This document shows, piece by piece, positions 40,800-64,000 of a stretch of 64,000 nucleotides of DNA. The notes under the pieces are model-generated. The model was not told the origin of the DNA and ran no database searches. It saw only the letters and a list, made by a program, of their open reading frames with translations. Each line of letters starts with the position of its first letter. Position 1 is the stretch's first letter. A program made the position numbers and the translations under genes. The stretch is taken from positions 141,858-205,857 of IMG/VR virus record IMGVR_UViG_3300046170_000519; one strand, 5' to 3'.

Positions 40800-41249
40800 A
40801 TGGCTTTTTATTTAAATCAATTCCATTGCATAGGAAATTTAGTTGCCGATCCTGAAATTAAAAATGCTGGATCTACAAAAGTCTGTAAATTCAGAATTGC
40901 AGTTAATAATCCTCATAATGAATCTGCGTTATTTTTTTATGTGGATGTTTGGGGTAAAGAGGGAGAAAAATGTATGCTTCTCAAGAAAGGAGCTCAAGTC
41001 TTTATATCTAATGCTTCAATTATACCTAAGCAATACCAAAAAGACTGTAACGGAACTCCAGTCTCTTGCACAACATTCACCGTAAATGTGGACGGTTATT
41101 GCGGTAAGGTTCAATTTGGTCCAAAAACTGAGATCCCAAGCTCCAATAAAATATCAAAAAATAAAACTAATAAAATTAACAACCCAGCAGAAACAAAAGA
41201 AAGCGATGAAGAAGATTATTCCGATTTCGAGCAAGAATTTGAGTTTTAA
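40800..41249 (+). CDS. ssb: single-stranded DNA-binding protein
   Basis: IGNLVADPEIK, F.IAVN, VDVWGK, LKKG.QV OB-fold pattern; acidic tail ESDEEDYSDFEQEFEF. Confidence 0.85.
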   Translation: MAFYLNQFHCIGNLVADPEIKNAGSTKVCKFRIAVNNPHNESALFFYVDVWGKEGEKCMLLKKGAQVFISNASIIPKQYQKDCNGTPVSCTTFTVNVDGYCGKVQFGPKTEIPSSNKISKNKTNKINNPAETKESDEEDYSDFEQEFEF

Positions 41250-46208: not shown

Positions 46209-46489
46209 TACTCATTATTTTCTTGTTCTGCGACAGCTTCTGATGCAAGCACAACTATATTGTATTTATTTCCGCTATCATCACAATATTTTACTTTTCT
46301 AAATTTCATTGTTAGATCTTTATCTTCTGTGTCAGATTGCTTAAATTCAATATCTACAATTTGATCAGATCTTGCATCAAAATTTATATAATCTTCATGT
46401 GAAGACTCCATACCAAGTACGTAATTAGCGGCTCCACCTTTTTCCGATATGGATACATAATAACCCGCACTTGAACTCATTGGTTGCAT
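46208..46489 (-). CDS. hypothetical tail-module protein (93 aa)
   Basis: Coupled to both neighbours. Confidence 0.5.
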   Translation of the reverse strand: MQPMSSSAGYYVSISEKGGAANYVLGMESSHEDYINFDARSDQIVDIEFKQSDTEDKDLTMKFRKVKYCDDSGNKYNIVVLASEAVAEQENNE

Positions 46490-46490
46490 A

Positions 46491-49004
46491 TTATCTATTT
46501 AGTAAGTTTTTTATTCTTGATGTTGTAAATTTTCTATAGTCTCTTAATTTAGCTTTTTCAGAAAAAACATACGAAGCTGTTAATTTTCCATCCACTACAT
46601 TTATAGACATTGAATCAACATATTTTAAATTATCTGGAGTTATCTCTAACATTTCATTTACTAATGAAAAAGACATTTTTTGTATATACGGAACCCCATA
46701 CACTGCATCACCACATTCATAGTTATATTGTTGAATTAAATATTCACTATCTTGGTTTACTCTAACAAAAGAATTCTGGTTTTGATCTTCCATCCAGGAG
46801 TAATCAATTTTTGTATGTTTTGTTCCTCTATTTAGAAGCCAAGCATCCGAAGGAGGCTCTTCCCCCTGTTTCCAATTTGTTTTACAACCTGTCCATGAAC
46901 TCTTCCTATATACTATAGGTTGAGCCGCCATACGGCTTCTCTGAATCTCTGGGTCAGATTGATCCCAGGGCTGTCTTCTTCCATCTGATCCTACATTAGC
47001 TCTTTCATAATAAACACCAGTTTGTTTAGTTCCAGAATAATGAGCTGTTCCACCCGACGCTCTTCTTTCTTTTTGGCTCTGTATCGCATCTACAGCTGTA
47101 TTTAAAAAATCTTGAGCAACTTGTTTTAATTCTGTCTTATTTACACATGCAACTCCATTGAATCGTTCTCCTTCTTCAGCTCTTACGGAAGGAGATGTGT
47201 CTATTTTCGTCTCTAACCCTAAATAATTCACATCGCTTGCGTCTATGGTTGGCATTGGTAATGGCCCATAATCAATGGCAACAACACCTTGGGTGAAATT
47301 ATATTCATCATCATTTCCTCCTATACCTATTTGATCACCCACCGTAGTACCTTTATCAGCCGAACAGGCTACTCCCAATGACTCTATATCCGCAGTACCA
47401 GGAACAAACATTAATGAACCTCCACTAGTTGTGACCCAAGATCTTGACCCTAAAGGGGAATCGGCAGTCCCAAAATTTTCAAAACCAGCTGATTGCAGAT
47501 TTCCAAACATAGCACTTTCTCCATCAGTGTCTCCTTGAGCTGTTATATCTTTACCATCAATTGTAGAAGAATACCAAATTCTATCAGTATTCTGATAGGC
47601 GCATACATGACTATCTTCAGCTGTACCTGAAACACCCAGCTCCTGTCTTGCTCTTTCTAAAAAATCTGCACCTTTAAGTTTGTCATTTACATTTTTATAA
47701 TACGTTCCATCCATTCCATAAACTGTTCTAGCCCAATCACCATCTATCTCTTCAGCTTCTGAGCATACCACAGCAACTCCAAGCTCTTGAAAAACAGGAT
47801 GATCTCCAATCAGATACCAGGCTAGCTCTTTATCATCCGCCTCATCTCCAGCCGATAAAGAACTTGATAAATCAACATCATCGCTTATAAACCTTAATTT
47901 AGGCACAGCTCTAAAACTTCCTGAATCATTATAAGCTGGAGCTTCGTCTTCAATATCATAGTCCGTTTCTCTAGGATATCGCCCAGGTCTTCTGCTCAAC
48001 TTTTGATATGAATGAGACACAGCTAAAGAATAATCTGTTTCTATTGACGAAGAAATCGCATTATCAGGAACTGTAATCCCTTCATCCTCCATAGCTTCTA
48101 TTTTTCCACTTATTTCCGTAAAATCAAAATATTTTGCCCCCCAAAAAGAATTAGAAGTAAAACTTTTTCCAAAAGCATTACCGATCCCACTAAGAACATC
48201 TGCAAAAGTTCCAGCATCATTAAATAAGCCAGTAAACCCTTCTGCATTTTCTATTTCTATATTCAAGCCTGCATTATTTTTTAAAAACTCTTCTATTTCT
48301 CTTTTTAAACCTCTTTCCCCTGCTTTTACTATTGAGGTTCCCGCATTAAAACTATAATAAAAAGATCCATACTCAACATAAGGATGAGGTATTCCTGGCG
48401 TATGATTTTTCTTATACGAATCCCTAGAATAACCGTTTATTCCAGAAACGTTATCAAAGGATACTGATTTCCAGTTTCTGGTAACAATTGAGCCATCAAC
48501 CCTAACATAACCATATCCGTTATTTATTTTATGATACCTACTCCCTTTATGCCCCCATAAAAAACTTCTCTCCACAAGAACATCCCTTTGTCTTCCATCT
48601 AAATATCCACTCGTAGTACCCGTAACATTAAACCACTCTCTCCCTAATAACAAATCAGCAAATGATTCCGCTCCATTGTAACTATCTCCAGGAGCTACAA
48701 AAAATGAGTTAAACTTTAACCACACAGAATCTATAAAAGTGCATGTTGTAATTACTCCAGATGAAGATTTTGCTGTTTGTATAGATACTAACTCCCAGCT
48801 TTCAGAGTTCCCAAAATTAAGACCAAACTCTTCAACTTCCTTTAGTGCGGTTGAAGCTAATTCTTTATGTTGCTGAATTCCTGTTTCAGGATCTCCAATT
48901 AGGCTAATTTCTAAAGTAGGCCCATTACTTGGAGACATTGTTAAATTTATACCTTGAAATTTACTACAAAAAGCATCACTTTTCTTGATTACACAGCTAC
49001 TCAT
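46491..49004 (-). CDS. putative tail tip/hub protein (837 aa)
   Basis: Position after the tape measure and two tail-like genes; long acidic ORF. Function inferred from synteny only. Confidence 0.5.
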   Translation of the reverse strand: MSSCVIKKSDAFCSKFQGINLTMSPSNGPTLEISLIGDPETGIQQHKELASTALKEVEEFGLNFGNSESWELVSIQTAKSSSGVITTCTFIDSVWLKFNSFFVAPGDSYNGAESFADLLLGREWFNVTGTTSGYLDGRQRDVLVERSFLWGHKGSRYHKINNGYGYVRVDGSIVTRNWKSVSFDNVSGINGYSRDSYKKNHTPGIPHPYVEYGSFYYSFNAGTSIVKAGERGLKREIEEFLKNNAGLNIEIENAEGFTGLFNDAGTFADVLSGIGNAFGKSFTSNSFWGAKYFDFTEISGKIEAMEDEGITVPDNAISSSIETDYSLAVSHSYQKLSRRPGRYPRETDYDIEDEAPAYNDSGSFRAVPKLRFISDDVDLSSSLSAGDEADDKELAWYLIGDHPVFQELGVAVVCSEAEEIDGDWARTVYGMDGTYYKNVNDKLKGADFLERARQELGVSGTAEDSHVCAYQNTDRIWYSSTIDGKDITAQGDTDGESAMFGNLQSAGFENFGTADSPLGSRSWVTTSGGSLMFVPGTADIESLGVACSADKGTTVGDQIGIGGNDDEYNFTQGVVAIDYGPLPMPTIDASDVNYLGLETKIDTSPSVRAEEGERFNGVACVNKTELKQVAQDFLNTAVDAIQSQKERRASGGTAHYSGTKQTGVYYERANVGSDGRRQPWDQSDPEIQRSRMAAQPIVYRKSSWTGCKTNWKQGEEPPSDAWLLNRGTKHTKIDYSWMEDQNQNSFVRVNQDSEYLIQQYNYECGDAVYGVPYIQKMSFSLVNEMLEITPDNLKYVDSMSINVVDGKLTASYVFSEKAKLRDYRKFTTSRIKNLLNR

Positions 49005-50644
49005 TATACATACCCCTTGTAATATGTTCTACTTTGACTAAAACTACAATACTGAGAATTTTCATTAAAAGAGTTAGACTCTGTTTCTATATTACTATAG
49101 TAAGAGCCAAACAAGTCATTTTCAATAGATAAAAATTTTTCATCAGCTTTTTCTTTTAATTTATTTATAGCCTGATCTTTTGTTAAACTTTTATCTGTAT
49201 AATTTCCACTAACTTCTACAGAAACAGTTCCTACGGTTATCCCATGTTTTGTAACTATATATTTATCCATTCCACCTCCAAAATTCATATCAACAGAGTA
49301 TCTATCCACAACATCATTAATTTCACAACTTAAATTTAAATTTTTAAAATCTTGAACTTTTTCTTTGTTAGTAAAAGAGTAGGAGAAGGATATAACCCCA
49401 TTAGACTCCTGTTCATCTATTTGTCTGGATTCTGGTTCCTGATTTAAAGTAATTCCCGAAAAAATTAAATTTAAAGACTCTTGAGCTTCTTGATGAATCC
49501 AGCTTCCATAAGAACTTGAATCATATGGCTTATTTTCAAATTCATTTTTAACCATCGCCCATCTACTTTCATTTCTTCCACTAGCTGTAATCTCTCCATC
49601 TACAGAGACTTCAAATACTCCTCCCTCCTTTTCTGATATATCCACTGAGCTTTGAATGCCAATACCGCATGAATTTCTAAATGAATTTTTTTCAAAAGTC
49701 ATTCTAAATTTTATTAAATTAACTTCTTCAACTTCTGAAATTTGTATTTGTTGTGGGATGTCTGAATAATTTAAATCTGCAGTTTTTTCTATTAGCTTCT
49801 GATGAAAATCAATTTCTTTAAATTTTTCTTGAACATCTGAAAAATTAAATTCCATTCCTAATTGTAGACTGCCTGACAAATTTGCTGTCTGAATTTCCCC
49901 AAATGAATTAGCTTCATCTATTATTAAACTAAAAATTCCTAAATCATCATTACTAGATTCTTTATTAGCTAAAAAAGTTCTTTGAACATTAAAGTTGTTT
50001 TTTAATCTATCGATGGATTCAACCCTATTTATTGAATGTAAATTTAAACCATTAAACTCTTCTGGTAGATTTATATCTTGAGACTCAATTGATTGAACAA
50101 AATCTATAGCATTCTGTAAAGCGTTAGATATACTGGATTCATTATTTTGATTTATTCCTGAATAGTTTTTTGTGTTTAATCCATCAGCTGATATAGTTTG
50201 ATCAATAGTATAATTTCCGTTTTCGTCTCTGGATATCTCTATAGAGTTAATTGGTTGTGTAACACCATAAAACTCTTTATACATTAGTTCATCATAAGAA
50301 TGAATTTCTATTGAATAATTCAATACGCCAGCATAATTAGCTGCTGGAAAATCAATTTTAGCTATTTCAACAATTTTTCTTTCGAATATTATTTTAGAAC
50401 CATCTATTATTTTTAAATTCTTAAAATTTTCAGAAAAATTATCAATAATTTTATCTCTCTTTGATGATAGTGTTGATATTTTATCACAGCTGTCTGAGTT
50501 AATTAAACCATGCAAAATAACAATTTCTTTCATCCCAATTTTTTTTCCAAAAACAACGTTTTCGGATGAAAACTCAACTGATGGTGTAGCTATGGACTCA
50601 TCATTAAATATATTCTTATTATTATATAAAATTTCAACACTCAT
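49004..50644 (-). CDS. putative tail protein (546 aa), probably paralogous to the N-terminal part of 50646-53849
   Basis: Synteny; similar S/N/I/E-rich, repeated beta-strand character and similar N-terminal pattern. Confidence 0.5.
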   Translation of the reverse strand: MSVEILYNNKNIFNDESIATPSVEFSSENVVFGKKIGMKEIVILHGLINSDSCDKISTLSSKRDKIIDNFSENFKNLKIIDGSKIIFERKIVEIAKIDFPAANYAGVLNYSIEIHSYDELMYKEFYGVTQPINSIEISRDENGNYTIDQTISADGLNTKNYSGINQNNESSISNALQNAIDFVQSIESQDINLPEEFNGLNLHSINRVESIDRLKNNFNVQRTFLANKESSNDDLGIFSLIIDEANSFGEIQTANLSGSLQLGMEFNFSDVQEKFKEIDFHQKLIEKTADLNYSDIPQQIQISEVEEVNLIKFRMTFEKNSFRNSCGIGIQSSVDISEKEGGVFEVSVDGEITASGRNESRWAMVKNEFENKPYDSSSYGSWIHQEAQESLNLIFSGITLNQEPESRQIDEQESNGVISFSYSFTNKEKVQDFKNLNLSCEINDVVDRYSVDMNFGGGMDKYIVTKHGITVGTVSVEVSGNYTDKSLTKDQAINKLKEKADEKFLSIENDLFGSYYSNIETESNSFNENSQYCSFSQSRTYYKGYV

Positions 50645-50645
50645 T

Positions 50646-53600
50646 TTATGTAGTTTGGGTTTCTGTTGATGTTGGGCAGCTCTGTAAATATTCTACATAT
50701 GCGAAATTTATTTGCTCGTGCTCTGATAGACTGTATATACAGTTTTTAACTATATCATCAAAATGATATCGCTCGTCATTATATTCAGATCGTAAAAAGC
50801 AAGATTGTACCCCAATAACATCATAACAACCCTGCCCGCTACTATCTCCAAATTCATTTTCTGCCCTCTGGTTTATAGTTAAATTTTGACCATCCGCTGG
50901 TATTTCTAATTCAAGCACAGTACTTTGAGTCGCATTTAAACTAGAACAACTTTCAAATATCATAGGACCTGCAAAAAACTCTGTATTTGATAGATCAGGA
51001 TGAAAAGAATTATTTTCAGAATTTTGTGAAATTTTTGAATTATGATCATAATTAGAGTCTTTATGATTGTATTCAAATTGACCTAAATTTCTAAAACCTC
51101 CTATGAAATTAGAGTTATTGATAGTCTCTTGAACCAAATCTGCAACAGTTAGATTCCAAAACTTTGGAATATATATTGTATGAAAATCGCATCTTTGAGC
51201 TCCAAGATCAGGAGGAGATGCGCCAGCATCTGATTCAAAAATTAAATAGTTAAAAGCTTGACCTGATCCAGCTTTAACACAATCTTTTACTACATTATTT
51301 TCAGCCCAACTAGGATCTATAAGGAATGTTGGATCACCCGAAGAAAAGACAGAGCCTCCGTCATCCCAACATTTTTTACCTCCATATATATCGCCATCAG
51401 GGAAGAGTTTTGCAGCAGTATCATTCCAGTTTTCAGGAATATAAACTTCATGGAAAACTCTTGATGTTGTATAAGTATATGTAAAAGTTGGTTGAGTCCC
51501 TCCTTGTGTTGCACTGTAAGTTGGGGTTTCTAATATTACTGTATTTGTTTGAGTTAAAGATGGTGTATCTGTTATTGTTAAAGTTGGTGTTGGTTTTGGA
51601 GTTCCCAACTCTAAGTCAAAGTTCCATTTAAACCCCCCATCTGTTATTGGTGTGAATGCCACCCCTTCTTCTGATAATTGTGTTGTAAAAGAAGATGTTG
51701 GAGTTCTTTCGTGTAAAGATAAACTTAAATCAAATCCAAAATCAGGATCTACCGTATCAGTAGGCACTACACATTCGGAAAGGTCAACTATTTCTCTTGT
51801 ATAATTCAATACATCGTTCTGATAATCAAATTCATATATTTTTTCAGCAAGAAATATATTTTCAGACTCAGGGGAATTGCCTTCTAGTAAATTTTTACTC
51901 AAAAGGATAGCTTCTGCTGCATTTTTAATATTTTTAAGACCTTGACCCTTTTTCCCAGTAACTTGTATGTTTATTGTTCTTGTTTTAGCTGTTTGTAGAG
52001 CTCCTAATCTTTGTAAAAAAGTTGAACAGTTTACAAAAAAAGCTGCACCTTGTTGGGTTGATTCATTTTCAGTTATAGTTAGCTCGAACTTTTTAACCAC
52101 ATTTTCTATATCTGAGTTTGGCATAGTATAACCAACTTGATTTGAGAATTGCAGCGAAAATTCAAAACTTCCAGTCAGGTTATCTATTGATACTTGTTTC
52201 TCCACCTCCTTGAAAGTATTACTATAAGACCTTCTTGTGGCTATTTCAGATACTTGACTTGCAGATTGATTCACTACATTCTCTATAGCTTTTTTTGAAT
52301 TATTAATTCTTTCTGCCGTCGTTGAACCATGCCCAATAGATTCACCGTTAATAGTTATTAATTCAAACCCATCTTGTTCCTCTATTGATACATTACTATC
52401 TAGAATATATTTAAACGATCCAGATTTTTGAAATTTCGGGGAATTTGTATATTTTAATGATATATTTGCAGAATTTGTTCCGTATTGATAATTCACAGAG
52501 GAATACAAAGGCTCCTCAAAAATTTGATTTTCAACTCCAGGAGTTGCGCTAGGGCACTGATAAAAAAATTGTTTTGAATAACTATTTAATTTAGAAGATA
52601 TTCTTGAATTAGAAGAATTTAAAAAAGATTGCGTAAAACTCTTAAGTGAATTATCGCTTTCATCTTTTAAGTTTACTAATAAAGTATCTTCTGTAATTTC
52701 TATAAACCCTTCTTCTGTTACATTAATAGATACATCGCTACGAGTGGAGTACTCTTTATTACTATCCAACTTATCAATTCTTAAATTTCTACTAGAGTTA
52801 TATTTATTACTTATATGATCGAATGATTCACTTTTTCCAAAATCATTAAAATTAATAACATTTTTATATTCTCCTTGATATGTGTTTGAGAGTATAGGGT
52901 AATTTATACTAGATGAAAATATATTACTAGCAAATTCTCTAGATTTATTTATAGGTAATTCATTTGTTTTATATAAATATATATTATCAAAAAAAGTATT
53001 ATTATCTGTTGATGCAATTAGTTCAATTTTTACATCCTGATTAGCTACATTATTTATTTCAATATAGTGTTGTCCAGTAAACTCTTTTAAATCTAAAGTT
53101 TCTTGTTGAAATTTAACCTGACAATCGTTATAAGTCTGAGAATCTTGCCCTAAATAATCAAAATATAAAGAGTATCTTCCTGTTGTTAAATTTATAGTAA
53201 AACTTGATTTTTGATTTGCAGAAACTTTAATAGAACCATTTCCTTTTCCATTTAGGTTTTCTAGTGCTCTATCTTGCACTGAAGAGTTTGACCATATATT
53301 TTTTCTATTTTCCAGTAAAGATTCTCTTTTTTCAAAACTACAGGACACCGAATGCTGAATATCAAGAGAATTAGCTGATTCCGAAAAGCTAAAATTTTCT
53401 GAAAAATCTTTTAAATATTTTAAATCTTCATTTTGAAGACCTAATTGCTGGGCTGTTTTTATATTATTTTTATCGTTAGTTGTAAAATAAATTTCATCAA
53501 CACTTCCAGCTTCTATAATTTCTATTGATGCTGTAAAGTTAGCATCTCTAATAAATTCTCCAGATACAGCAAAACTAATAACAGAGCCTTCTCCATGACT

Positions 53601-53849
53601 TACTCCATTTATAAATATTTCTTGATTATCATTAATTATTGAATAATCAGAAGAAGATGATGATAACTCTTCAGAATTTAACCTTTTATATTCCTCAAAA
53701 ATACTTTCAACTCCAGAAGGGTTTTGTAAATCTAATAATAATCCAGATATTAGTATTTCTTTTTTGTTACTTTTAACATTTTCGTTCCCGATTTTTTCTA
53801 GAGAAGATGTTAAACTTAATAAGTTTACATTTTCAAATTGTATTGACAT
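50646..53849 (-). CDS. putative distal tail protein with Thr/Pro linker and Cys-containing C-terminal domain (1067 aa)
   Basis: First gene after the tape measure; TPKPTPTLTITDTPSLTQT linker; ends CPTSTETQTT. Confidence 0.55.
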   Translation of the reverse strand: MSIQFENVNLLSLTSSLEKIGNENVKSNKKEILISGLLLDLQNPSGVESIFEEYKRLNSEELSSSSSDYSIINDNQEIFINGVSHGEGSVISFAVSGEFIRDANFTASIEIIEAGSVDEIYFTTNDKNNIKTAQQLGLQNEDLKYLKDFSENFSFSESANSLDIQHSVSCSFEKRESLLENRKNIWSNSSVQDRALENLNGKGNGSIKVSANQKSSFTINLTTGRYSLYFDYLGQDSQTYNDCQVKFQQETLDLKEFTGQHYIEINNVANQDVKIELIASTDNNTFFDNIYLYKTNELPINKSREFASNIFSSSINYPILSNTYQGEYKNVINFNDFGKSESFDHISNKYNSSRNLRIDKLDSNKEYSTRSDVSINVTEEGFIEITEDTLLVNLKDESDNSLKSFTQSFLNSSNSRISSKLNSYSKQFFYQCPSATPGVENQIFEEPLYSSVNYQYGTNSANISLKYTNSPKFQKSGSFKYILDSNVSIEEQDGFELITINGESIGHGSTTAERINNSKKAIENVVNQSASQVSEIATRRSYSNTFKEVEKQVSIDNLTGSFEFSLQFSNQVGYTMPNSDIENVVKKFELTITENESTQQGAAFFVNCSTFLQRLGALQTAKTRTINIQVTGKKGQGLKNIKNAAEAILLSKNLLEGNSPESENIFLAEKIYEFDYQNDVLNYTREIVDLSECVVPTDTVDPDFGFDLSLSLHERTPTSSFTTQLSEEGVAFTPITDGGFKWNFDLELGTPKPTPTLTITDTPSLTQTNTVILETPTYSATQGGTQPTFTYTYTTSRVFHEVYIPENWNDTAAKLFPDGDIYGGKKCWDDGGSVFSSGDPTFLIDPSWAENNVVKDCVKAGSGQAFNYLIFESDAGASPPDLGAQRCDFHTIYIPKFWNLTVADLVQETINNSNFIGGFRNLGQFEYNHKDSNYDHNSKISQNSENNSFHPDLSNTEFFAGPMIFESCSSLNATQSTVLELEIPADGQNLTINQRAENEFGDSSGQGCYDVIGVQSCFLRSEYNDERYHFDDIVKNCIYSLSEHEQINFAYVEYLQSCPTSTETQTT

Positions 53850-53855
53850 AATATA

Positions 53856-56800
53856 TTATTGGCCTCCTAATATATTATTTTTATCTATTCTTTGCGCAAG
53901 AACAGATTCTAAATATCCAATAATCATAGGATCTTGCAATGCTTGCACTACCGATTGCTTAACAGCTGGTTTTAGATTTCTATTTATAGCTTCATTATTA
54001 AACTCGAATCTAACATCCCCTGTTACAGTGTGCTTCATAACCACTTCATTTAATTGCTCAGTTAACTGTTGTGGGAAAGATAGTATTGTTTCATTCACTG
54101 CTTCGAATAAAGTTCTAGAAGTGTCCAGTCCCTCAGTATTTAGCATTACAGATTCGTTAAAAAGGGCCATTTGTTCATTCAGGATGGATTGATTCTCTAA
54201 TAAAAGCATATTTGTTTCATTAAGTCTGTTGCTGGTCTCAATTAATAATTTATTACTTTCAACTAAAGGTTGGTTTCCTCCTCCGCCGTCACCGTTGCCA
54301 CCTGGAACTGGTTGATCACCTTTAGGTGTATTATTTAAAGATTGTACTACAGCCTGACCAACTGCTTGAGCTATCTCTCCGTAATTATTTAATTTTATAC
54401 CCTCTGACCTCTGCTTCAATAATTCATTTTGAACAGCTTTCATTGGATCTTCTAACCTAGTATAATCAGCTTCTCCAAGGAGTTTAGTCTGCTCTAATAT
54501 TGATTCATCAATTGCTTGCACAGCCTTCAAGTCTTCCACAGCTGTATGTTTCAATTCTTCCATTTTTTTTATAAGATCTGGACTTACATTATTAGCTCTA
54601 AATGTCTCAATAACCTTTTCTAAATTTCTAATACCTACCACAAAATTAGCTTCATCATTACTCATTCCAGTAAGTATTTGTTGTTGCACTCCTAGTATTT
54701 CAGCCAAACGTCTCGCATTTTCAACACTTAGAGCTTTCTCATCCATTGTATCTACAGTATTATCGGCAACGTAATCTCTTGGCCCAAATTCCCTATTTAG
54801 TAACTCACCAGTTCTTTCATTTCTGTATACATCTATACCTTCTCCAAGATCTGCGACATTTTTCAAATCTTCCTTGGATAAAAATTTACCACCTATTCCC
54901 TCCAACCTACCCCTACCAAGTTCAGCTCTTTCAAGTTTTCTATTTATAGCCGCTTTTTGTATCTCAATAGCTAATTTTTGCATACTTAAACTGCTCATCA
55001 TTGCTGCTTTTTCTGCGATAGCATTACCCTGTCCTCCAATAACCTGCAACTTACCTATAAATTGTTTTATTTCTTTAAGAGATATGTTTCCATCTTCATT
55101 ACTTTTTAAAAACGCTGTATAAGCATCCTGCATAGCTTGAGTACTTTCTTTTGTAGATTTCTCAAAAAATTGAGCGAAACCAGCTTGCCCAGTCAATACT
55201 TTTTCCTTCGCTTTAACCCCCTCCCCTTGCAAGAATGATTTTGATGCATCAGAGGGCTCGAATTCAGCTTTAGGCATTGAATTGCTTACAAGATTTATTA
55301 ATTCACTTTTTAACTGTAAATTGCTATCCGCTTTAATCTTTGAAACTTCATTTTCAGCTCTTCGATCAATTCCTTCGTCAGGAGATCTCGATCCACCATT
55401 TACTTTAAAATCATTAACAGCATTCCTAACCTGAAAAGAAGCTTCCAGTCTGGCTGAAGCTAATTCTAAATTGTTCTCAAATTTAGTTAAAATGTTATTT
55501 ATTAACTCTTGTTCTCTTATGAATTTTTGGTATTCTGAAATTAAAACCTCTTTTTGGTTTTTTAACCTCATTTCTGTATCCTGAGCTTTTTCTACAGCAT
55601 CAGAATATGCATCAACGCTTTGGGCAGCCTCTCGCTGGGATTCTATCAACTCAGAAAGCAATGCTGATCCTGCCAAATTAAATTCTCCATCTTCACCTTT
55701 TATAAATCTGTTCATATTATCTACAGTTTCATTGCCTCCTTTATATTTTTTTAACGACTGCCCTACTTCTGTGTCTCCAATATTAGAGCCTAATTCAACT
55801 AAAGTTTTAATAGTTTTATCTCTTAAATCATTAGCGACTTCATTTTCCATCTTGGCAATTTGTGCATCAAGCTCTAAATCTTCCTGCCTTTTAGCTGTAA
55901 TAGCTTCAGGAGTTAATCCCCTCAAATCAAAGCCTCCTAAACCTGCTGAACCATCAGATAATTGTTGTATCACTTTATCACTTGCCATTATTTCAATCTC
56001 TTTATCAATAACTTTATTAAGCTCAGCCCCTTTATCCTTAGCTTTTGCAAATTCGCCAAACATAGGATCAGCGCCCTTAAGCATTCTTTTATTGAAATCA
56101 TATGTGCCATTACCAAAAGCACTCATTGTTGCGGCTGTAGTTGCTTGAACTGCACTCCCAAATGAACTCGTAACAAGGCTATTAGGTTTAGAGTATTCAT
56201 CCGAATTAAGATCCTGGCCCATTTTAATTAATTGATCTTGAACAGTTAAATTCTTCTGAGCATCTTGCATGGTACGGTTAAGTATTCCTAATTTCTCTGA
56301 AGTGCTTAAACTTGAATTCGCTAACTCTCTCATTCTTTGAGCTTGTTTAGGATCAGATAAGGAGTTAATAGAATCTCTAATTTGTTGATTAGCGCTCACT
56401 ATTCCCGAAACATCTCCCATTTCAGTGGAGTTTTTTAAATCAACTAGTGATTGTCCAAAACTTTCTAGCTTACTGACATCTTTAAACTCTTCGTCAAGCT
56501 TCTTTTTTGCAGCAGCTAAAGCCTTAAAAGTCTTTGATTGATCCTCTTTTACTCCATACTCAGCCATCCCTTTTATAGCTCCGCCTGCTCCTCCCACAAT
56601 CATTCCTGGAGCCCCAAAAGCTGCACCGTATGACAATCCAGTTAAGGCATTTGTGGCAAGGCTAGCTCCGCCTCCAAGTTCTGGCCCCTGCCTCCCGTCA
56701 GCAATCATTTGAGCCCCCATCGGTCCCATGAACATAGCTCCCATAGCAAGCCCGCCCGACTTCCCCTTCAGGTTTTTATATCTTTGTGAATTTTCAGGGC

Positions 56801-59800
56801 TTCTAATATTACTTACAAATTTTGAAAAGCCTTTTTTTCCAGCGTTTCTTTTTTTGAATTCTTTTTGCCTTTGGTTTAGTTCGTAAGCTTGATTTTTATC
56901 AAGATCTGTGTAAGGGTTTATCAAACCTGATCCGCCTAGAAATCTACCATTTTTTCTATCCTGCTCTAAGTGGAATTTTTCTTGTCTTTTTCTCTCTCTT
57001 ATTTCTTCTATAGTCATTGCGAAAGAAGGTACTCCGTGAGTTTTAGGATCAATACCTTTTGCTTCAGACCTATTAATTCCTTGCTGCACACCCATAGGTT
57101 CATCTACGGTATTAATAACCGCTAACCCCATTGGATTCATTGAGTTCTTTAATTTAGAATGTTTTGATACTTTTATTTTATTAGAGGATATACCTCTTTG
57201 TTTTAAAGCTTTTGTCTCTCTTTCTATAGCTTCATCTAATGCAAAATTAGGCATAAATCCGTTTCCGAAATTTCTAATTTTCCCTCTATAATTTGGGCTT
57301 GCTGAATGCCGCAAGTATTCATTATCTAAATCTTTAATTGAGGAAATTTTCGCCTTTTGTTTATTATAGTAATACGTTAATTTATTTTTTGTCTCTTCGG
57401 GTAATACCCTGAATTGTTTAGAATTTAAAAATCTTTTAATATTATCCAAATCTTCTAAACGATGTCTTCTGCTGATTTTAAACACTTGCTTTCTATCTGT
57501 TGAAACAAGCGGTCTACTTTGCATATAACGACCATCCTTAGAAGCTTGCACCTTTTTATTAAAATCTGCAATTCTAGTACTTAATTTTGAAAATTCTTGT
57601 CCAGTCAAACCTTGCCTAACTTTTTTTTGTTGATTATTTTTTAAAATTAAATTACTAAAACTAGACTGCTTATCTGAAAAACTTCTCATAACTCTAGAGA
57701 AACTAGGTGTAAACCCAGAAGCAAAAGATTTTTTAGGCACTATTCTTTTTCCTCTCATTACATAACCCGTTTCTTTAGGTATTACTTTTTTATTACCAGC
57801 CCAATGTTGAGGTTTTGCATACTTACGATAATAACTATCTAAAGCTTTTTTCTGTATTTTTATTTCTTCAGCATTTCTTTCTAGCCTTTTAAGCTGTTCT
57901 AAAGATGGATCAGAACTCCTGCCTGATAATATATCCATTATCGATTGCTGGTTTGATGCAAAGCTTCTCTTTATTTCTTGATTTTTAAAACTATAAACTT
58001 CAGCATCTTTCTTTGGTAAATACATATAATTTTTACCAGTATCAACCTGAACCCCTCTAAAAGTTTCTTTTACAGATTTCTGTATTTTATTTAAACCAGT
58101 TATTCTGCTAGAAAAAGCTGCAGCTTTTCTAAAGTGCTCAGAAAAATCTATTTTTCTTTTTTCCCCTGAAATTCCGTAATCAACATCAGCATATGGATTT
58201 TTCATACCTTTATCGAAAGAGAAGGTTTTTGATAAAGTCTTTCTAGGTTCTTTAATTAGAGATTTTCCAGCTTTAACTATAGAACTTTCATTAACCCATT
58301 TATTGAAAGCGAACTGCGCCTTATTTGAAATTTTTGAAGATCTTTCAGTTTGTAATGGATTTTTAATATATCTTTTTTGTCTTTCTATTGCAGATAAATA
58401 AGGATTTTCTGTCGAACTTTTTGTTGGTGAAAATATTTTTTTACCAAGATTTGAAACTTTATTAAATGTATTTTCAGCTCGCTGTCTAACCTGAAGTCTT
58501 TCTGAAAAATTTCTCCAACTATCACTTATGGATTGAGGTGCATTTTTAATTTTTCCTGTTTTTTCATTTACTATTCTCGAAACTTGTTCTTTAATATTTT
58601 TTTGTTTTTTTCTTAGCGATAAAATTTCTTTTTTAATTTTACTAGCTTGATTAGCTGGCATATTTTTAATAGCTTCTGCTTTTGTCTTTATTGAGCTGGT
58701 TATTTCATCCCTCTTTGACATTAAAGACTCAAACTTCCTAGATATTGATTGTCCATTAAATTTTTGTATCAAATTAGCTAACTGATCTTTTCTTCTTGCA
58801 GTCATTTGATTTACAGAGCCACCTATGTCTTGATATATATTTTTAATTTTATCTTTTTGCTCTATTATAGATCCTTTAATGTCTATTTTTTTTGCCGCTT
58901 GCATTTTCCCCAGCATAGCTGTGTTTTGCGATAATCTTTTGAGTGATATCCCCCCAGAAGAGCCTTCTCTACCTTTTTTGGTTATTGCTATTGTTGACAT
59001 TAAATTAGACAAAGAGGCATCAGCAACCCCCCTGAATCCCTTGCCTCCAAATTTCGTAATAACATTTTTAACTCCTTGAGGTTTAAGTTGCAGAGTGTGC
59101 TCTCCATTACTTAAAGCTTTACCTATCGTAAAGGAAGGGTCTAGTGACTGAACTGATCCCGTTTGCTTATTAGTTCCTAATTTTATATTTTTTGCTACAG
59201 ATCTTAGATTTTGACCTAATTGTTGTTTTTCTATATCTATAGTAGGTTTAAATCCAAGCCTTGATAGAAGACTTTTACCTGCTCCATATCTTTGAGCATC
59301 AAGCAATTGTTTATTTACTTTTTTTGTTACAAAATCTAAAACTTTTTTATTGCTTACTATTTGATTAATTATAGCTTTATTATTAAAATTTATTGGCTTT
59401 CCATCTTTTAATATTCCACCTTCTTTATCGACACTAATATTCATATTAGTTGATACTCCCCCTATATTTTTCGATAAAGCTTGTCTAGTATGATCTTCTA
59501 ACCCAAAACCTATTTCTTTAGCGAAATTAGGTATATAACCTTCAGATAAATGATTTATTACATTATTCGAATATTGAGGGCTTAAATGGTTAGATTCAAA
59601 ATTTGGGATAAATCCTTCAGAAAAATTTTGCTTAAACCCTTGAATTATGTCATCTATTTTTTCTTTTTTTAAATATTTAAGTTCAACCTTAAAAGGTCGG
59701 TCTTGAGGAAGTGGGTTATTGTAATAATTTTTTCTTTCATAAAAACCTGCATTTCCTAATTTTATTTTTTTACCAAGCTCGTAATCTCTCTTTTTCTGAG

Positions 59801-62800
59801 CCTCTAAATCTTGTTTCTCTTTTTGTAAAGCTTTATTAAAGTTTTTGGATACATACGGAGGAATGTCAGACCTAGTTGATAAATATTTAGAAAAAGATTC
59901 TACTTCTTTTAAATCTCCTTGTACTCTCTGATATTTAGGGCTTATCCATTCAGTTTTTGAGCTTTCCCAGTCAGGGGTATTAAACTTAGCTTCCTTAAAT
60001 TTTTTCCCTTTAAATAAGAAATTGCCTTTAGGATCTTCTATTCCTTTTATGTTCCTAATTGATGTAACTCGTTTTATCCCACCTCTCATCGCATAATTTG
60101 GAATAAATCCTTTAGAGAAATTTTTGCCAATCCAAAGATTCTCAAGTCTTACTAATTTATCTTGTTTATGAGCATTTCGCCCTAAACCAAACTGCCTCAG
60201 GGATTTAATCAATTTTCTTTCTTCTCCAGGTAAATATTCTGCCTGATCCCTTGTTTTAAACTTTCCAGACTCACGATAATAATTTTCTTGCCTAAATCCT
60301 TCTACCCTCTTTCTTAATTGAACGGGGTTAAAAACTCCTTCCATTTGCATTTTTGGAATATTTTTTGAAAGCCTTTTCCTGTCTAATATTTTTTTTGCGG
60401 ACAATAAAGCTCTTGGGATCCTGGGTCCAATTACAGAACCAGCATCTATTTTAGTATAAGGTCTCCCAGATTTAGCTGCAGATTCAATTTCTTTTATTAA
60501 TTTTTTATATATACTTGAACCAAACTCACCCTCATTAGCTCTGATGTGACGCACATTTAAAACACGCTCTTTACCCCTGTTCATGTCATAAACATTGCTA
60601 CTCCTACCAAATCCTGGTCGTTTAACCATAAAATTAGGCACAAACCCTTTTGACATATTTGGTAATTTTTTTCTTGAAGGGCCAAACTCTTTTCTTGTTT
60701 TTCTGGATACTTCTTGTTGTTTCTGTTTATCTGTTTCCGATATCTTTTGTCTTACATCTGGAAGTTTTAAAACTTTTTGAACAAAATCTCCTTTTGTTCC
60801 TTGACTTATCCCTATTTTTGCATCAGCAAAAGGAGTGTAGTAACCAAATAAACTTTGGAGAGCTTTATCTGGAAAGCCTGATATGTCGAAAGTAGCATTG
60901 TTTTGAGAAAATAATTTATTTTTTCCAATAGAAGATAAAGCTGTTTCAAAAACAGATCCTGCAGCGGAACCGACACTTCCTGCATTTGCCATTTTTGTTA
61001 TTGGGTTATTATTTGAAGCAAACCTTCCTCCAGATAATTCACTAGCAAGTTTCTTAGATTCGCCTAGCATTAAGTTTTTTAATTTTTCTCTAGTTTTTGT
61101 CTCTGTACCCTGCAGGCTCTTATTTTTGATTCCTTCAATTCTGTATTTAATTCTTGTCTTATTTCCATCTTTTGGAGAGTGAATAGTGTCAACTTTTTGC
61201 CTAACATTATTTCTCGCAACCAACATCGTTGCTTGCCTACTTGCGTCAATAGTATTTATTTGATTTCTTTTTCTTTTTGTCTCTATTGCTTGGTTATTCA
61301 TAACATCTTTGTTATACCTAGCTTTAAAACCTAAAAGAGCTTTTTGCTCTTCACTGGAGAAATCTTTAATAGTCAGTTTTTCATTGTTTAAGTTTATCGG
61401 CTTGCCCTCTCTTAAATTTCTAACCCTTTGAACACTTACAAACCCTCTTTGGGTAGCAACTCCAGATTTTGAAAAGTTCGGGACATATCCTTTTGTTAAA
61501 TTTTTAACATACTCTGGGACATACCCTTTTGAATAATTAAAATTTACCCCATGAGGGAATAGGGGGTTTTCAGTTTGTTGATCTTTTGGTGAATTTTTTT
61601 TCTTTGCTGTTATTTTACTTTCCCTAAGAACTGTATCTGATGGAGTTATCATATTAATTCCACCAGAAAACATTGTTCTTCCCCCTTTAGTTAAATTAAT
61701 CTTGTCGGTTTTATTATTCTTAATTCCAATTTTTGGTTGATTAAAGCTAGCTTGAGAATTAGTTAAGGCTAGTAACCACTCTGAAGCAGCCTTTTTTAAT
61801 CCCACTATTATGTTCTGCTCTGTTGTGGCTTTAGTTTCGAAACTTTTTTCAGATTTATTTTTTTTGCTTCTCGCAGTTAAATCCATGAAGGCGTTTTTTC
61901 CTGTAAATTTTATATCAGAAAATCCAGATTTAGCTAGGTAATTTTTACTCTCCATTTCTCCAACTAAACCTTTAGCTTTTCCTGTTAATGTCCCAAAAGC
62001 TTGATGGACTGCATAAGGTCTTTTACCGTAATAAGGTCTTTTCGCTATGTTTTCTGCGGATTTAAATATCCCCTTGTAAGACCCACTTTTTACAAGATCC
62101 CCATATGTTTGTTTAATTCTTTTTACGGCGTCTGGATTGATTTTATATTTAGTTAAGTTTGGATCTTTGTTTTTTGGATCTCTTACTATTAAACCTTGAA
62201 TTTGACTATTGCCCTTAACTATTTTATTAGCTTCTTTCTTGAAGTGATCATTGTCATGACTCATTCTGTGAACATTCAACTTCCCAGTAAATACATCTGT
62301 TAAGTCTGCATATTGAGATATTATTGATCCACCTCCATCAAACCCTCCTAGCTTGGAAGCTGAATAGCTATATGTTTTTCCACTTAAGCTTTGTCCATAT
62401 TTTTGTCTCGAAAAATTTGGTATATATCCGTCCGCTGCATTTACTTTTTTAGCTCCATTTGGTAATCCATATTGTTTAGCCATATCTCTATTGAAAACAG
62501 CATCGGCTCCAGAATTTTTAAAATTCTTCACAATCCACTCCCCTGTATTTACAACCACATCAGAGGATTGCCCTGGCCTCATTTTAATTTTTGTTTTTAC
62601 AGGTTTATCCCCTTTTCTTGCTCCACCTATACCCCTACTGACATCTAAACTTTCTTTTTCAAATGCGGGTAAAAATCCATTAGCTAAAGATAGAGTTTTT
62701 CTGCCTTTAGCTCTCGATGATCTTTTACCCATAGGTACAAACCCTACATCTGTTGCCCCCACACCAATTAACCTAGAACTCGCCGCTATTCTTTTGATTA

Positions 62801-64000
62801 AAGCTTCTTGCTTCAGTCTTTCGGCTGTTTCTTGTTTTATTGTATTTAATATTATCTGTTCTTGCTTTGCTGTGTTCGAACCTGCTGCAAGAATTTTTTG
62901 ATATATATTTGAATTGGTTGTTAAAATTTGACTTATTGCAGCTTGTAAACCTTGCTGTCTTTTTGTTTCTGAATTTAATCCGAGAATATCAGAAAAAGCT
63001 TCTTTCGCAAATTTTGTAACAAGACCAAATATTTTTATAAATGCAGCTCCTAAAATTACCATCCCTGGCCCAGTCAGGAAGCTACCAATTCCACTAATTA
63101 AGTTTTTTGCTAAGTTAGATCCACTGTCTTCAGAAAGTATTTCATTAAATTTTTTAGCTAAATTATTTAAAAAAGTAAGAATCTCTTTAAAGTTATCTGA
63201 AAAAGCTATATCCCCAATAGAAGAAGCTAATTCTTTTGCGCTTAAGGATGTTTGAGTGAATAGAGCTGACAGTGTTTTGTTTAACTCCTCATTTCTTTTC
63301 GTCGCTTCATTCGTTGTATTATTAGCCACATTTAAAGCATCATTATAAATGGAGTATCCACTGTTTAGATCTTGTATTAAGGCTTGCAGATTTTGAATTT
63401 GATAAACTCCAGCTAATTGCTCTGCTGTATAAGCTTTTTGACTATCAGAGAGGTTTTTATAAACATTTGCATAATCTAATATTATATCCATACCTCCACG
63501 AAAAGTTCCATCTAAATTTCTTGTAGCTACGCCAATTTCTTCCAAAGCTTCTCTAACCCCGCTTCTTTTTATTCTTGTGAAAATACTTTTAAATCCGTTA
63601 CCTATTACTGATCCACCCCTCGCAGTTCTTTGCTGCACTGCAGTCACAACAGCAGCTAATTCATTAAACTCAACACCTGAAGATTGCGCAACAGCTCCTG
63701 CCCTTGATAAAGCTTCAGCTAAATCAGCTGAAGACACAGCAAAAGCAGCATCAACATTAGCCATTCTATTAACTATCTGGGTGTGAGTTATTCCTTCTTC
63801 ATTAAAAGAATTAATTGCAGCTGTTAAAGTTTCTGTTGATTTTACTGTATCCAACCCTGACAATCTACTAAGTATTAAAGCTGAATTAACTCTAGCTAAA
63901 GTTTCTTCAGCACTTAAACCCTGTCTGGCTAATTCTGTCGCAGATTCCGCCACAGCAGAAAAAGATGTTGCAGTGTTTCTAGCTACATCAAACAATCCTT
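53856..64000 (-). CDS. tail tape measure protein, TP901-like, with large modular insert (start outside the window)
   Basis: TP901-type core LARQG...AVSSADLAEALSRAG...GV.FNELAA...TAR.GSVIGN.FKSIFTRI; Gly/Ala hydrophobic segments at about 56.5-56.8 kb; frame open to the window edge, so the TTG at 63995 is not the true start. Confidence 0.9.
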   Translation of the reverse strand, partial: GLFDVARNTATSFSAVAESATELARQGLSAEETLARVNSALILSRLSGLDTVKSTETLTAAINSFNEEGITHTQIVNRMANVDAAFAVSSADLAEALSRAGAVAQSSGVEFNELAAVVTAVQQRTARGGSVIGNGFKSIFTRIKRSGVREALEEIGVATRNLDGTFRGGMDIILDYANVYKNLSDSQKAYTAEQLAGVYQIQNLQALIQDLNSGYSIYNDALNVANNTTNEATKRNEELNKTLSALFTQTSLSAKELASSIGDIAFSDNFKEILTFLNNLAKKFNEILSEDSGSNLAKNLISGIGSFLTGPGMVILGAAFIKIFGLVTKFAKEAFSDILGLNSETKRQQGLQAAISQILTTNSNIYQKILAAGSNTAKQEQIILNTIKQETAERLKQEALIKRIAASSRLIGVGATDVGFVPMGKRSSRAKGRKTLSLANGFLPAFEKESLDVSRGIGGARKGDKPVKTKIKMRPGQSSDVVVNTGEWIVKNFKNSGADAVFNRDMAKQYGLPNGAKKVNAADGYIPNFSRQKYGQSLSGKTYSYSASKLGGFDGGGSIISQYADLTDVFTGKLNVHRMSHDNDHFKKEANKIVKGNSQIQGLIVRDPKNKDPNLTKYKINPDAVKRIKQTYGDLVKSGSYKGIFKSAENIAKRPYYGKRPYAVHQAFGTLTGKAKGLVGEMESKNYLAKSGFSDIKFTGKNAFMDLTARSKKNKSEKSFETKATTEQNIIVGLKKAASEWLLALTNSQASFNQPKIGIKNNKTDKINLTKGGRTMFSGGINMITPSDTVLRESKITAKKKNSPKDQQTENPLFPHGVNFNYSKGYVPEYVKNLTKGYVPNFSKSGVATQRGFVSVQRVRNLREGKPINLNNEKLTIKDFSSEEQKALLGFKARYNKDVMNNQAIETKRKRNQINTIDASRQATMLVARNNVRQKVDTIHSPKDGNKTRIKYRIEGIKNKSLQGTETKTREKLKNLMLGESKKLASELSGGRFASNNNPITKMANAGSVGSAAGSVFETALSSIGKNKLFSQNNATFDISGFPDKALQSLFGYYTPFADAKIGISQGTKGDFVQKVLKLPDVRQKISETDKQKQQEVSRKTRKEFGPSRKKLPNMSKGFVPNFMVKRPGFGRSSNVYDMNRGKERVLNVRHIRANEGEFGSSIYKKLIKEIESAAKSGRPYTKIDAGSVIGPRIPRALLSAKKILDRKRLSKNIPKMQMEGVFNPVQLRKRVEGFRQENYYRESGKFKTRDQAEYLPGEERKLIKSLRQFGLGRNAHKQDKLVRLENLWIGKNFSKGFIPNYAMRGGIKRVTSIRNIKGIEDPKGNFLFKGKKFKEAKFNTPDWESSKTEWISPKYQRVQGDLKEVESFSKYLSTRSDIPPYVSKNFNKALQKEKQDLEAQKKRDYELGKKIKLGNAGFYERKNYYNNPLPQDRPFKVELKYLKKEKIDDIIQGFKQNFSEGFIPNFESNHLSPQYSNNVINHLSEGYIPNFAKEIGFGLEDHTRQALSKNIGGVSTNMNISVDKEGGILKDGKPINFNNKAIINQIVSNKKVLDFVTKKVNKQLLDAQRYGAGKSLLSRLGFKPTIDIEKQQLGQNLRSVAKNIKLGTNKQTGSVQSLDPSFTIGKALSNGEHTLQLKPQGVKNVITKFGGKGFRGVADASLSNLMSTIAITKKGREGSSGGISLKRLSQNTAMLGKMQAAKKIDIKGSIIEQKDKIKNIYQDIGGSVNQMTARRKDQLANLIQKFNGQSISRKFESLMSKRDEITSSIKTKAEAIKNMPANQASKIKKEILSLRKKQKNIKEQVSRIVNEKTGKIKNAPQSISDSWRNFSERLQVRQRAENTFNKVSNLGKKIFSPTKSSTENPYLSAIERQKRYIKNPLQTERSSKISNKAQFAFNKWVNESSIVKAGKSLIKEPRKTLSKTFSFDKGMKNPYADVDYGISGEKRKIDFSEHFRKAAAFSSRITGLNKIQKSVKETFRGVQVDTGKNYMYLPKKDAEVYSFKNQEIKRSFASNQQSIMDILSGRSSDPSLEQLKRLERNAEEIKIQKKALDSYYRKYAKPQHWAGNKKVIPKETGYVMRGKRIVPKKSFASGFTPSFSRVMRSFSDKQSSFSNLILKNNQQKKVRQGLTGQEFSKLSTRIADFNKKVQASKDGRYMQSRPLVSTDRKQVFKISRRHRLEDLDNIKRFLNSKQFRVLPEETKNKLTYYYNKQKAKISSIKDLDNEYLRHSASPNYRGKIRNFGNGFMPNFALDEAIERETKALKQRGISSNKIKVSKHSKLKNSMNPMGLAVINTVDEPMGVQQGINRSEAKGIDPKTHGVPSFAMTIEEIRERKRQEKFHLEQDRKNGRFLGGSGLINPYTDLDKNQAYELNQRQKEFKKRNAGKKGFSKFVSNIRSPENSQRYKNLKGKSGGLAMGAMFMGPMGAQMIADGRQGPELGGGASLATNALTGLSYGAAFGAPGMIVGGAGGAIKGMAEYGVKEDQSKTFKALAAAKKKLDEEFKDVSKLESFGQSLVDLKNSTEMGDVSGIVSANQQIRDSINSLSDPKQAQRMRELANSSLSTSEKLGILNRTMQDAQKNLTVQDQLIKMGQDLNSDEYSKPNSLVTSSFGSAVQATTAATMSAFGNGTYDFNKRMLKGADPMFGEFAKAKDKGAELNKVIDKEIEIMASDKVIQQLSDGSAGLGGFDLRGLTPEAITAKRQEDLELDAQIAKMENEVANDLRDKTIKTLVELGSNIGDTEVGQSLKKYKGGNETVDNMNRFIKGEDGEFNLAGSALLSELIESQREAAQSVDAYSDAVEKAQDTEMRLKNQKEVLISEYQKFIREQELINNILTKFENNLELASARLEASFQVRNAVNDFKVNGGSRSPDEGIDRRAENEVSKIKADSNLQLKSELINLVSNSMPKAEFEPSDASKSFLQGEGVKAKEKVLTGQAGFAQFFEKSTKESTQAMQDAYTAFLKSNEDGNISLKEIKQFIGKLQVIGGQGNAIAEKAAMMSSLSMQKLAIEIQKAAINRKLERAELGRGRLEGIGGKFLSKEDLKNVADLGEGIDVYRNERTGELLNREFGPRDYVADNTVDTMDEKALSVENARRLAEILGVQQQILTGMSNDEANFVVGIRNLEKVIETFRANNVSPDLIKKMEELKHTAVEDLKAVQAIDESILEQTKLLGEADYTRLEDPMKAVQNELLKQRSEGIKLNNYGEIAQAVGQAVVQSLNNTPKGDQPVPGGNGDGGGGNQPLVESNKLLIETSNRLNETNMLLLENQSILNEQMALFNESVMLNTEGLDTSRTLFEAVNETILSFPQQLTEQLNEVVMKHTVTGDVRFEFNNEAINRNLKPAVKQSVVQALQDPMIIGYLESVLAQRIDKNNILGGQ
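57018..62684 (-). repeat. dispersed peptide motif G[FY]xP[NSAE][FY], 11 copies including variants, inside the tape measure protein
   Basis: Copies near 62670 (GFLPAF), 62420 (GYIPNF), 61520 (GYVPEY), 61480 (GYVPNF), 60640 (GFVPNF), 60100 (GFIPNY), 59605 (GFIPNF), 59530 (GYIPNF), 57710 (GFTPSF), 57250 (GFMPNF) and 57025 (GVPSF). Confidence 0.85.

Follow-up and report, generated by a model that had tools for sequence, protein, structure and literature searches.

A predicted PD-(D/E)xK-type domain as candidate nuclease cargo in the giant tape measure protein of a phage

The window analysed here is the whole stretch of 64,000 nucleotides that forms the final 64 kb of a single 205,857-bp virus contig (IMG/VR record IMGVR_UViG_3300046170_000519, positions 141,858 to 205,857). 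On its minus strand lies the gene of a giant tail tape measure protein (TMP; window 53856..63998), and within this gene lies a module of about 290 amino acids (aa) with a predicted nuclease-like fold, the subject of this study. All features of the gene given below are on the minus strand, and translation table 11 was used throughout. Inside the window, the gene is one uninterrupted open frame of 3,380 codons, whose 3,380-aa translation is called P0001. The frame meets no stop codon at the contig junction and runs on for another 117 codons to an ATG at contig position 349, with AAGGA just before it. The full carrier protein is 3,497 aa long, the same size as its cluster representative P0002. 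IMG/VR classes the record as 'linear', yet the open reading frame (ORF) passes seamlessly over both ends (window 63998 onward to contig 1-349); the assembly must therefore either be closed into a circle or be circularly permuted with no overlap at its termini. Residue numbers are those of P0001, the part in the window, unless stated otherwise; full-length numbers are P0001 numbers plus 117, and the module has a numbering of its own.

The carrier is a tail tape measure protein, by its core domain as well as by its position in the tail/late operon. P0001 residues 6-197 (63408..63983) form the PF10145 PhageMin_Tail core (E 3.7e-29) and match six PHROG tape measure families (best 9.1e-42). The large terminase gene lies ~17 kb upstream on the same strand, within a run of same-strand late genes, and the synteny of the TMP gene is kept in relatives. 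Terminase and TMP core (tblastn) reach the same distant cultured relatives, namely the Lactococcus 949-group, Bacillus Basilisk-like phages and Clostridium phage c-st; the closest cultured relatives by both markers are long-tailed siphoviruses. No tail-sheath family is detectable in the phage genome. The phage is a marine jumbo phage with a very long and probably non-contractile tail. Lactococcus phage LW81 has an annotated TMP of 3,213 aa, so giant TMPs are already known in this lineage.

Beyond the core domain, the protein falls into regions of distinct composition. A hydrophobic segment (residues 300-332; 63003..63101; Kyte-Doolittle scan) precedes a basic region (residues 441-2252; 57243..62678) with a net charge of +187 over 1,812 aa, which ten copies of the motif G[FY]xPx[FY] divide into cassettes; shuffled sequences give an expectation of 0.01 copies. 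The extended form of the motif is N-[FL]-[SG]-x-G-[FY]-[IV]-P-N-F, and it is also present in the homologous TMPs P0003-P0008, L004-L012, L020 and L049. No paper mentioning a G[FY]xPNF motif was found in the literature searched. Further on come a Gly-rich hydrophobic stretch (residues 2415-2482; 56553..56756) and an acidic C-terminal third (residues 2483-3380; 53856..56552, stop codon 53856-53858) with a net charge of about -31, which is conserved weakly across homologues. The TMP of LW81 shares the PF10145 core, the late-gene neighbourhood and a comparable size with this protein, but it has neither the G[FY]xPNF motif nor the basic cassette region and shows no similarity beyond the core.

Among homologues, the cassettes keep their identity and change their order: cassettes 2, 3 and 4 of P0001 appear as 3, x, 4, 2 in P0007. 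The ends of BLAST segments between homologues coincide with motif copies. Self-BLAST finds no paralogy among the cassettes, which rules out internal duplication. Synonymous codons vary freely between motif copies; this rules out G[FY]xPNF as a DNA-level recombination site, and the motif is therefore under selection as a peptide. Two short elements are especially well conserved. The first is a short cassette between motif copies 1 and 2 (GFLPAF, GYIPNF) at 62430-62660 (residues 447-523), which contains '...VVVNTGEWIV...' and is strongly conserved in every homologue, including a distant clade described below. The second lies directly past the last motif copy, at 57015-57242 (residues ~2253-2328), and reads '...GLAVxNTxDEPxGVxQGIxR...GIDPKTHG...PSFA'; it keeps 52% identity even in the distant clade (TMPs >5,000 aa), unlike the cassettes that precede it.

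The module is the first large cassette of the TMP and sits in the N-terminal quarter of the protein (residues 530-823; full-length 647-940; 61530..62411). It carries a net charge of +27, is predicted to fold as one unit, and fills exactly the interval between two motif copies (62412-62429 and 61509-61526). Its upstream boundary is motif copy 2 (GYIPNF; 62412..62429), and its downstream boundary is formed by copies 3 and 4 (GYVPEY, GYVPNF; 61473..61526), the first of which is at 61509-61526. An initial annotation, made from the DNA letters alone, had proposed a cargo module at 61530-62409 with a PD-(D/E)xK nuclease-like signature. The module is confirmed, with an exact span of 61530-62411 and a motif at both ends, and the peptide quoted for it, GLVGEMESKNYL...FMDL...SFETKA, is indeed present at residues 677-724 (61827-61970).

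Relatives of the module are few and uniform in context. Megablast and tblastn searches with the locus and the module against 50,697 phage records gave no match, and a word search using only the module likewise found nothing. An exhaustive profile search of 1.84 billion representatives returned six proteins only, all of them giant TMPs or pieces of such, and there are therefore no free-standing relatives of the module. The homologue set consists of these six, additions from IMG/VR scans, and one contig from a metagenome-assembled genome (MAG). Each relative is either a giant TMP of 2,802-3,502 aa or a fragment whose gene is broken by a contig end or by long-read frame errors. In every one, the module is the first large cassette, in the same position and flanked by the motif.

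As a bare string, the proposed signature carries no weight. The loose pattern E-x(15-35)-D-x(8-25)-[DE]xK has 32 sites in the TMP, against 30 +/- 8 in shuffles; in a protein so rich in Lys and Glu, the string occurs at chance frequency, is therefore no evidence by itself and was rejected as such. The signature of the initial annotation stands on another footing, the conservation of its four residues. Across 11 homologues at 25-45% identity, the invariant positions of the module are GxxGE, G163, D177, E192-x-K194, K206-K207, K231 and N239. E152 (P0001 E681, full-length E798; 61956..61958) belongs to the GxxGE motif in helix alpha1 and is invariant in all ten homologues that cover it. D177 (P0001 D706, full-length D823; 61881..61883), at the N-terminal end of strand beta2, is invariant in 11 of 11, as are the E-x-K residues E192 and K194 (P0001 E721/K723, full-length E838/K840; 61830..61838) on strand beta3 and the Lys-Lys pair K206/K207 (61785..61796) in a basic second helix (200-222). 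In the first alignment, invariance was confined to two of the ten Glu, three of the 14 Asp and four of the 42 Lys of the module, the four catalytic-type residues included; the two Glu are E152 and E192. These four residues were still invariant after homologues down to 25% identity had been added. Conservation of the E/D/ExK residues had been set beforehand as a refutation test, and they are conserved in every homologue found.

The predicted structure places these residues in a recognizable frame. The AlphaFold model of the module has a mean predicted local distance difference test score (pLDDT) of 78 and a predicted template modelling score (pTM) of 0.73, and it consists of N-terminal strands, a helical bundle and a nuclease-like core. 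The PD-(D/E)xK-like core covers module residues 133-257 (61641..62015), with the order alpha1, beta1-beta3, alpha2, beta4, beta5 (DSSP; hhalign). By DSSP, its elements are helix 133-161, strands 164-169, 178-182 and 188-193, helix 200-222, and strands 237-239 and 252-257. E152 is in helix 133-161, D177 directly before strand 178-182, and E192/K194 at the end of strand 188-193. The PD-(D/E)xK superfamily is defined by an Asp at the N-terminus of strand 2 and a (D/E)xK on strand 3, often with an acidic residue in helix 1 (PMC3424549). In the model, all four residues sit where this definition puts them, and the second helix is basic as well.

Fold searches point in the same direction, with modest scores. 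No Foldseek match of the module model in PDB or BFVD reached E <= 0.001. A second look at the Foldseek matches by VIA-align scored FAN1 at 5.4 and Hjc at 3.5, and further matches were SPARDA, Ecl18kI, HindIII and I-Ssp6803I. The alignment to Hjc (1gef) comprises 84 residues at 20% identity and covers model residues 144-264. In ESM-Atlas, all named rows are restriction-endonuclease-fold families (NOV_C, Mrr_cat, EcoRV, PDDEXK_5, PDDEXK_14), again with modest scores. A language-model look-alike search yielded weak leads only, and its Tox-REase-7 match at 0.80 was not used as evidence. A search of the phage genome with the Hjc model gave no match, in a run that returned no control sequences.

Profile-profile comparison identifies the nearest family. 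Against a reference of nine UPF0102/YraN sequences carrying PF02021, hhalign matched the module core with a probability of 83.8% (E 7.8e-6) over 100 columns. The alignment pairs GxxGE with GxxGE, the Asp of the module with the Asp of 'EID', and the ExK of the module with 'EVK'. Controls were clean: the reversed profile scored 0.0, column-shuffled profiles at most 0.3 and block-shuffled profiles at most 20.5, and the accepted superfamily pair YraN and Mrr_cat scored 80.0, on a level with the module. With the eleventh and most divergent homologue included, the match to UPF0102 was 78.6%. The PF02021 model itself does not hit the module or any of 10 homologues at E up to 10, so the module is a distant relative of UPF0102/YraN and not a member. 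The module has in common with UPF0102/YraN (PF02021) and Hjc the order and spacing of the motifs, with GxxGE in helix 1, Asp at strand 2 and ExK on strand 3. YraN and Hjc are free-standing proteins of ~110-170 aa; the module core sits instead in a virion protein of 3,497 aa and, unlike them, appears from the models to need an N-terminal extension of 130 residues to fold.

The cassette might of course have nothing to do with the superfamily; its motif would then be a coincidence in a sequence rich in Lys and Glu, and its alpha/beta topology a generic look-alike. Such a coincidence is very improbable, given the convergence of conservation, residue placement, enrichment of restriction-endonuclease folds among the structural neighbours, and a YraN match with clean controls. 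A restriction-endonuclease-like fold, also set beforehand as a refutation test, is predicted by the model, the fold searches and the profile comparison. Four independent lines, namely conservation, predicted structure, fold searches and profile-profile comparison, are thus in agreement, and the module very probably folds as a PD-(D/E)xK (restriction-endonuclease-type) domain. More precisely, the C-terminal ~125 residues of the cassette are predicted to be a PD-(D/E)xK domain with a full set of catalytic residues, distantly related to the UPF0102/YraN-Hjc type.

The best explanation of these data is that the first large cassette of the 3,497-aa marine jumbo phage TMP is a PD-(D/E)xK nuclease cargo, which would be delivered to the host and would cut nucleic acid; judged from sequence comparison and structural models, its probability is about 0.55. 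The domain would bind a divalent metal and cut nucleic acid. As a segment of the TMP it would travel inside the tail lumen, probably unfolded, and in three copies if the TMP is trimeric as in phage 80alpha. It would then reach the host with the genome or just ahead of it and refold. A handful of metal-dependent nuclease molecules might make a few cuts, either in DNA of the host or of a rival or in some DNA structure; the initial annotation had suggested host takeover or the exclusion of competing elements as the purpose of an injected domain. The TMP of phage 80alpha is a trimer in the tail lumen with its N-termini at the neck, adjoining the DNA end; TMPs are thought to exit the tail with the DNA and are often seen fragmented (PMC11661146).

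The same conservation bears on whether the fold is used for cutting at all. It could have been kept as a DNA-binding, lumen-binding or length-adding element of a very long TMP: the length of a TMP sets tail length, and inactive PD-(D/E)xK domains are known, e.g. in RecC (PMC3424549). The strongly basic central region (+187, of which the module has +27) would suit such a role, as the positive charge of the 80alpha TMP is reported to complement the negative lumen of the tube (PMC11661146). A spacer or charge role, however, leaves the invariance of the four catalytic positions, GxxG and KK unexplained at 25% identity, and inactive members of the family usually lose their catalytic residues. A role other than cutting is therefore held to be quite unlikely.

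The identity of the substrate is a separate question. By profile and by fold, the enzymes nearest to the module are structure-specific ones of the Hjc/YraN type. The domain could be an active structure- or end-specific nuclease whose substrate is the incoming genome of the phage itself and not the DNA of the host or of a rival; its task might be to process or hold the end that enters first, or to help in recombining terminal redundancy so that the genome becomes circular. The module lies in the N-terminal quarter of the TMP, and the N-termini of the 80alpha TMP are at the neck beside the DNA end (PMC11661146). Three copies per virion would suit single-turnover work, the genome is circularly permuted in the assembly, and every member of the subfamily has the cassette in a fixed position. 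A fixed first position and presence in all members do not look like a fast-changing effector. Against an action on the phage's own genome stands the distant clade of the same architecture, whose first cassette is unrelated; the domain is thus not generally needed for genome entry. In sum, Hjc/YraN-like kinship and fixed position favour the phage's own DNA as target, and replacement in the distant clade favours cargo; restriction of the activity to the phage genome is considered unlikely.

This more distant clade has the same motif, a basic cassette region and ~38-42% identity in the N-terminal part, with open frames of 4,202 and >5,001 aa. Presence in all members of the subfamily and absence from the distant clade mean that the cassette is fixed within the subfamily and exchangeable over longer distances, and other content in the same slot fits the notion of cargo. 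The two frames of the distant clade, L049 (G004:C4:1-17000; >5,001 aa) and L050 (G004:C1:1-13800; 4,202 aa), both reach the contig end, and their TMP genes have seven copies of the same motif; the contigs are binned into a bacterial MAG. To our knowledge, they are among the longest tape measure frames.

Several observations weigh against reading the cassette as a delivered nuclease. The AlphaFold model is based on only 8 sequences. The core folded alone reaches a pLDDT of 54, and the N-terminal 130 residues are therefore part of the same folding unit. The PD-(D/E)xK core topology is also found within unrelated folds (PMC3424549); together with the modest scores, this makes the fold searches insufficient by themselves. 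In the same hhalign build, the VRR_NUC and Mrr_cat alignments show no similarity to the module (probability 0.2). Of the FAN1/VRR-NUC nucleases, which count among the closest known systems, FAN1 scores 5.4 in the VIA-align look and VRR_NUC 0.2 by hhalign. Scans of the module, the core and ten homologues with Pfam, PHROG and NCBIfam gave nothing meaningful, even at E up to 10, and neither did PDB sequence searches with the module (one sequence and two profiles). Since none of these models detects it, the module is a new sequence family. As for delivery, a folded 33-kDa domain in three copies would be a tight fit for the lumen of the tail tube. In the distant clade, the first cassette is unrelated, and no cassette resembles the module or YraN; a clade of motif-bearing giant TMPs without the cassette means that it is not indispensable for such tails.

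Enzymatic functions in tape measure proteins have precedents. Cell-wall hydrolase motifs occur in mycobacteriophage TMPs, and pb2 of phage T5 has a muralytic part. The idea of a TMP activity used at entry is common to these proteins and the TMP described here; the TMP-embedded domains known to us act on the cell wall and not on nucleic acid. TMPs are usually seen as rulers, sometimes with a cell-wall-degrading motif. A conserved nuclease active site in a TMP would mean that the tail lumen can deliver nucleic-acid-targeting enzymes at the onset of infection, before phage expression. The literature searched yielded no report of a TMP-borne nuclease, nor of a TMP region built from shuffled cassettes with motif boundaries.

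The closest conceptual parallel is with the polyvalent proteins of phages and conjugative elements, in which nucleic-acid-targeting domains are common (Iyer et al. 2017, PMC5512222). Their link to the virion is mainly through MuF or portal fusions, they are processed by zincin-like peptidases, and tape measure proteins have 0 occurrences in that work (PMC5512222). Very large size, multiple modules, a setting among virion genes, predicted entry into the host with the DNA and recombination of modules between relatives are all shared with the TMP described here. Polyvalent proteins combine several disparate enzymatic domains with a processing peptidase; this TMP does not, as no processing peptidase or second enzymatic Pfam domain was detected in any TMP cassette at E up to 10. 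The module, the one cassette that was folded, is also the only one to which a fold can be assigned. TMPs with cell-wall-degrading motifs, giant TMPs and injected polyvalent proteins (PMC5512222) are already known; two features of this TMP are new against the literature searched, its nuclease-fold domain and its region of shuffled, motif-bounded cassettes.

A wider generalization, the 'polyvalent tape measure', can be put forward tentatively. Giant TMPs (2,800 to >5,000 aa) might carry exchangeable effector cassettes in the tail lumen, with the G[FYL]xPN[FY] linker as a processing or release site, and deliver them ahead of the genome, the nuclease being one cargo. This generalization is doubtful; if true, it would mean that phage effectors can also be injected by way of the tail lumen, separately from the head/MuF route of polyvalent proteins. 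The cassette architecture offers a concrete system for studying the share of cargo and ruler in a TMP, the passage of globular domains through the tube, and the possible cleavage of TMPs after ejection. Within the PD-(D/E)xK superfamily, the module also adds a sequence family that is new and escapes current libraries.

The phage recurs in seawater: the stretch is nearly complete in at least 14 seawater metagenome runs. Parts of the TMP gene at window 60966-62538 also find matching contigs in two metatranscriptome libraries, five of them identical and one (62316-62538) with 4 differences. These contigs are phage sequence present in RNA libraries and no proof of transcription.

Several other features of the window accompany the TMP gene. 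Four large genes downstream of it (44667-53849, minus strand), encoding 1,067, 546, 837 and 513 aa, are presumably tail-tip or baseplate proteins; they have no Pfam or PHROG match, and the same holds for the genes upstream, terminase excepted. At 41246-42502 (minus strand), a 418-aa protein has a sub-threshold match to Tetraspanin (E 1e-6; 29 bits against a cut-off of 32.1) and a match to DUF4834; it is probably a multi-pass membrane protein. Window 34896-37349 (minus strand) encodes the large subunit of a class I ribonucleotide reductase with an ATP-cone (E 2.8e-173). The proteins most similar to it (73-83% identity) are encoded on contigs, one of 210,818 bp, that have been binned into MAGs of five unrelated phyla and are probably mis-binned phage contigs. 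The NrdA relatives were rejected as a clue to the host, given that the MAG labels span five unrelated taxa.

The other end of the window is dominated by a tandem array of ~19 kb (3624-22628, with further parts at 24528-24986, 25841-27841 and 29290-30185) with periods of 12, 24, 30 and 66. The array accounts for the AT skew (-0.6) and the GC content (45%) found here. It encodes Thr-Glu/Thr-Gln dipeptide repeats on the minus strand, including an ORF of 2,201 aa (16282-22887), towards whose end the reading shifts to another frame of the same repeat (PRQKLRL). The whole array may thus be a single, much longer gene that frame changes have interrupted, and the Thr-Glu/Thr-Gln repeat is also present in three neighbouring genes.

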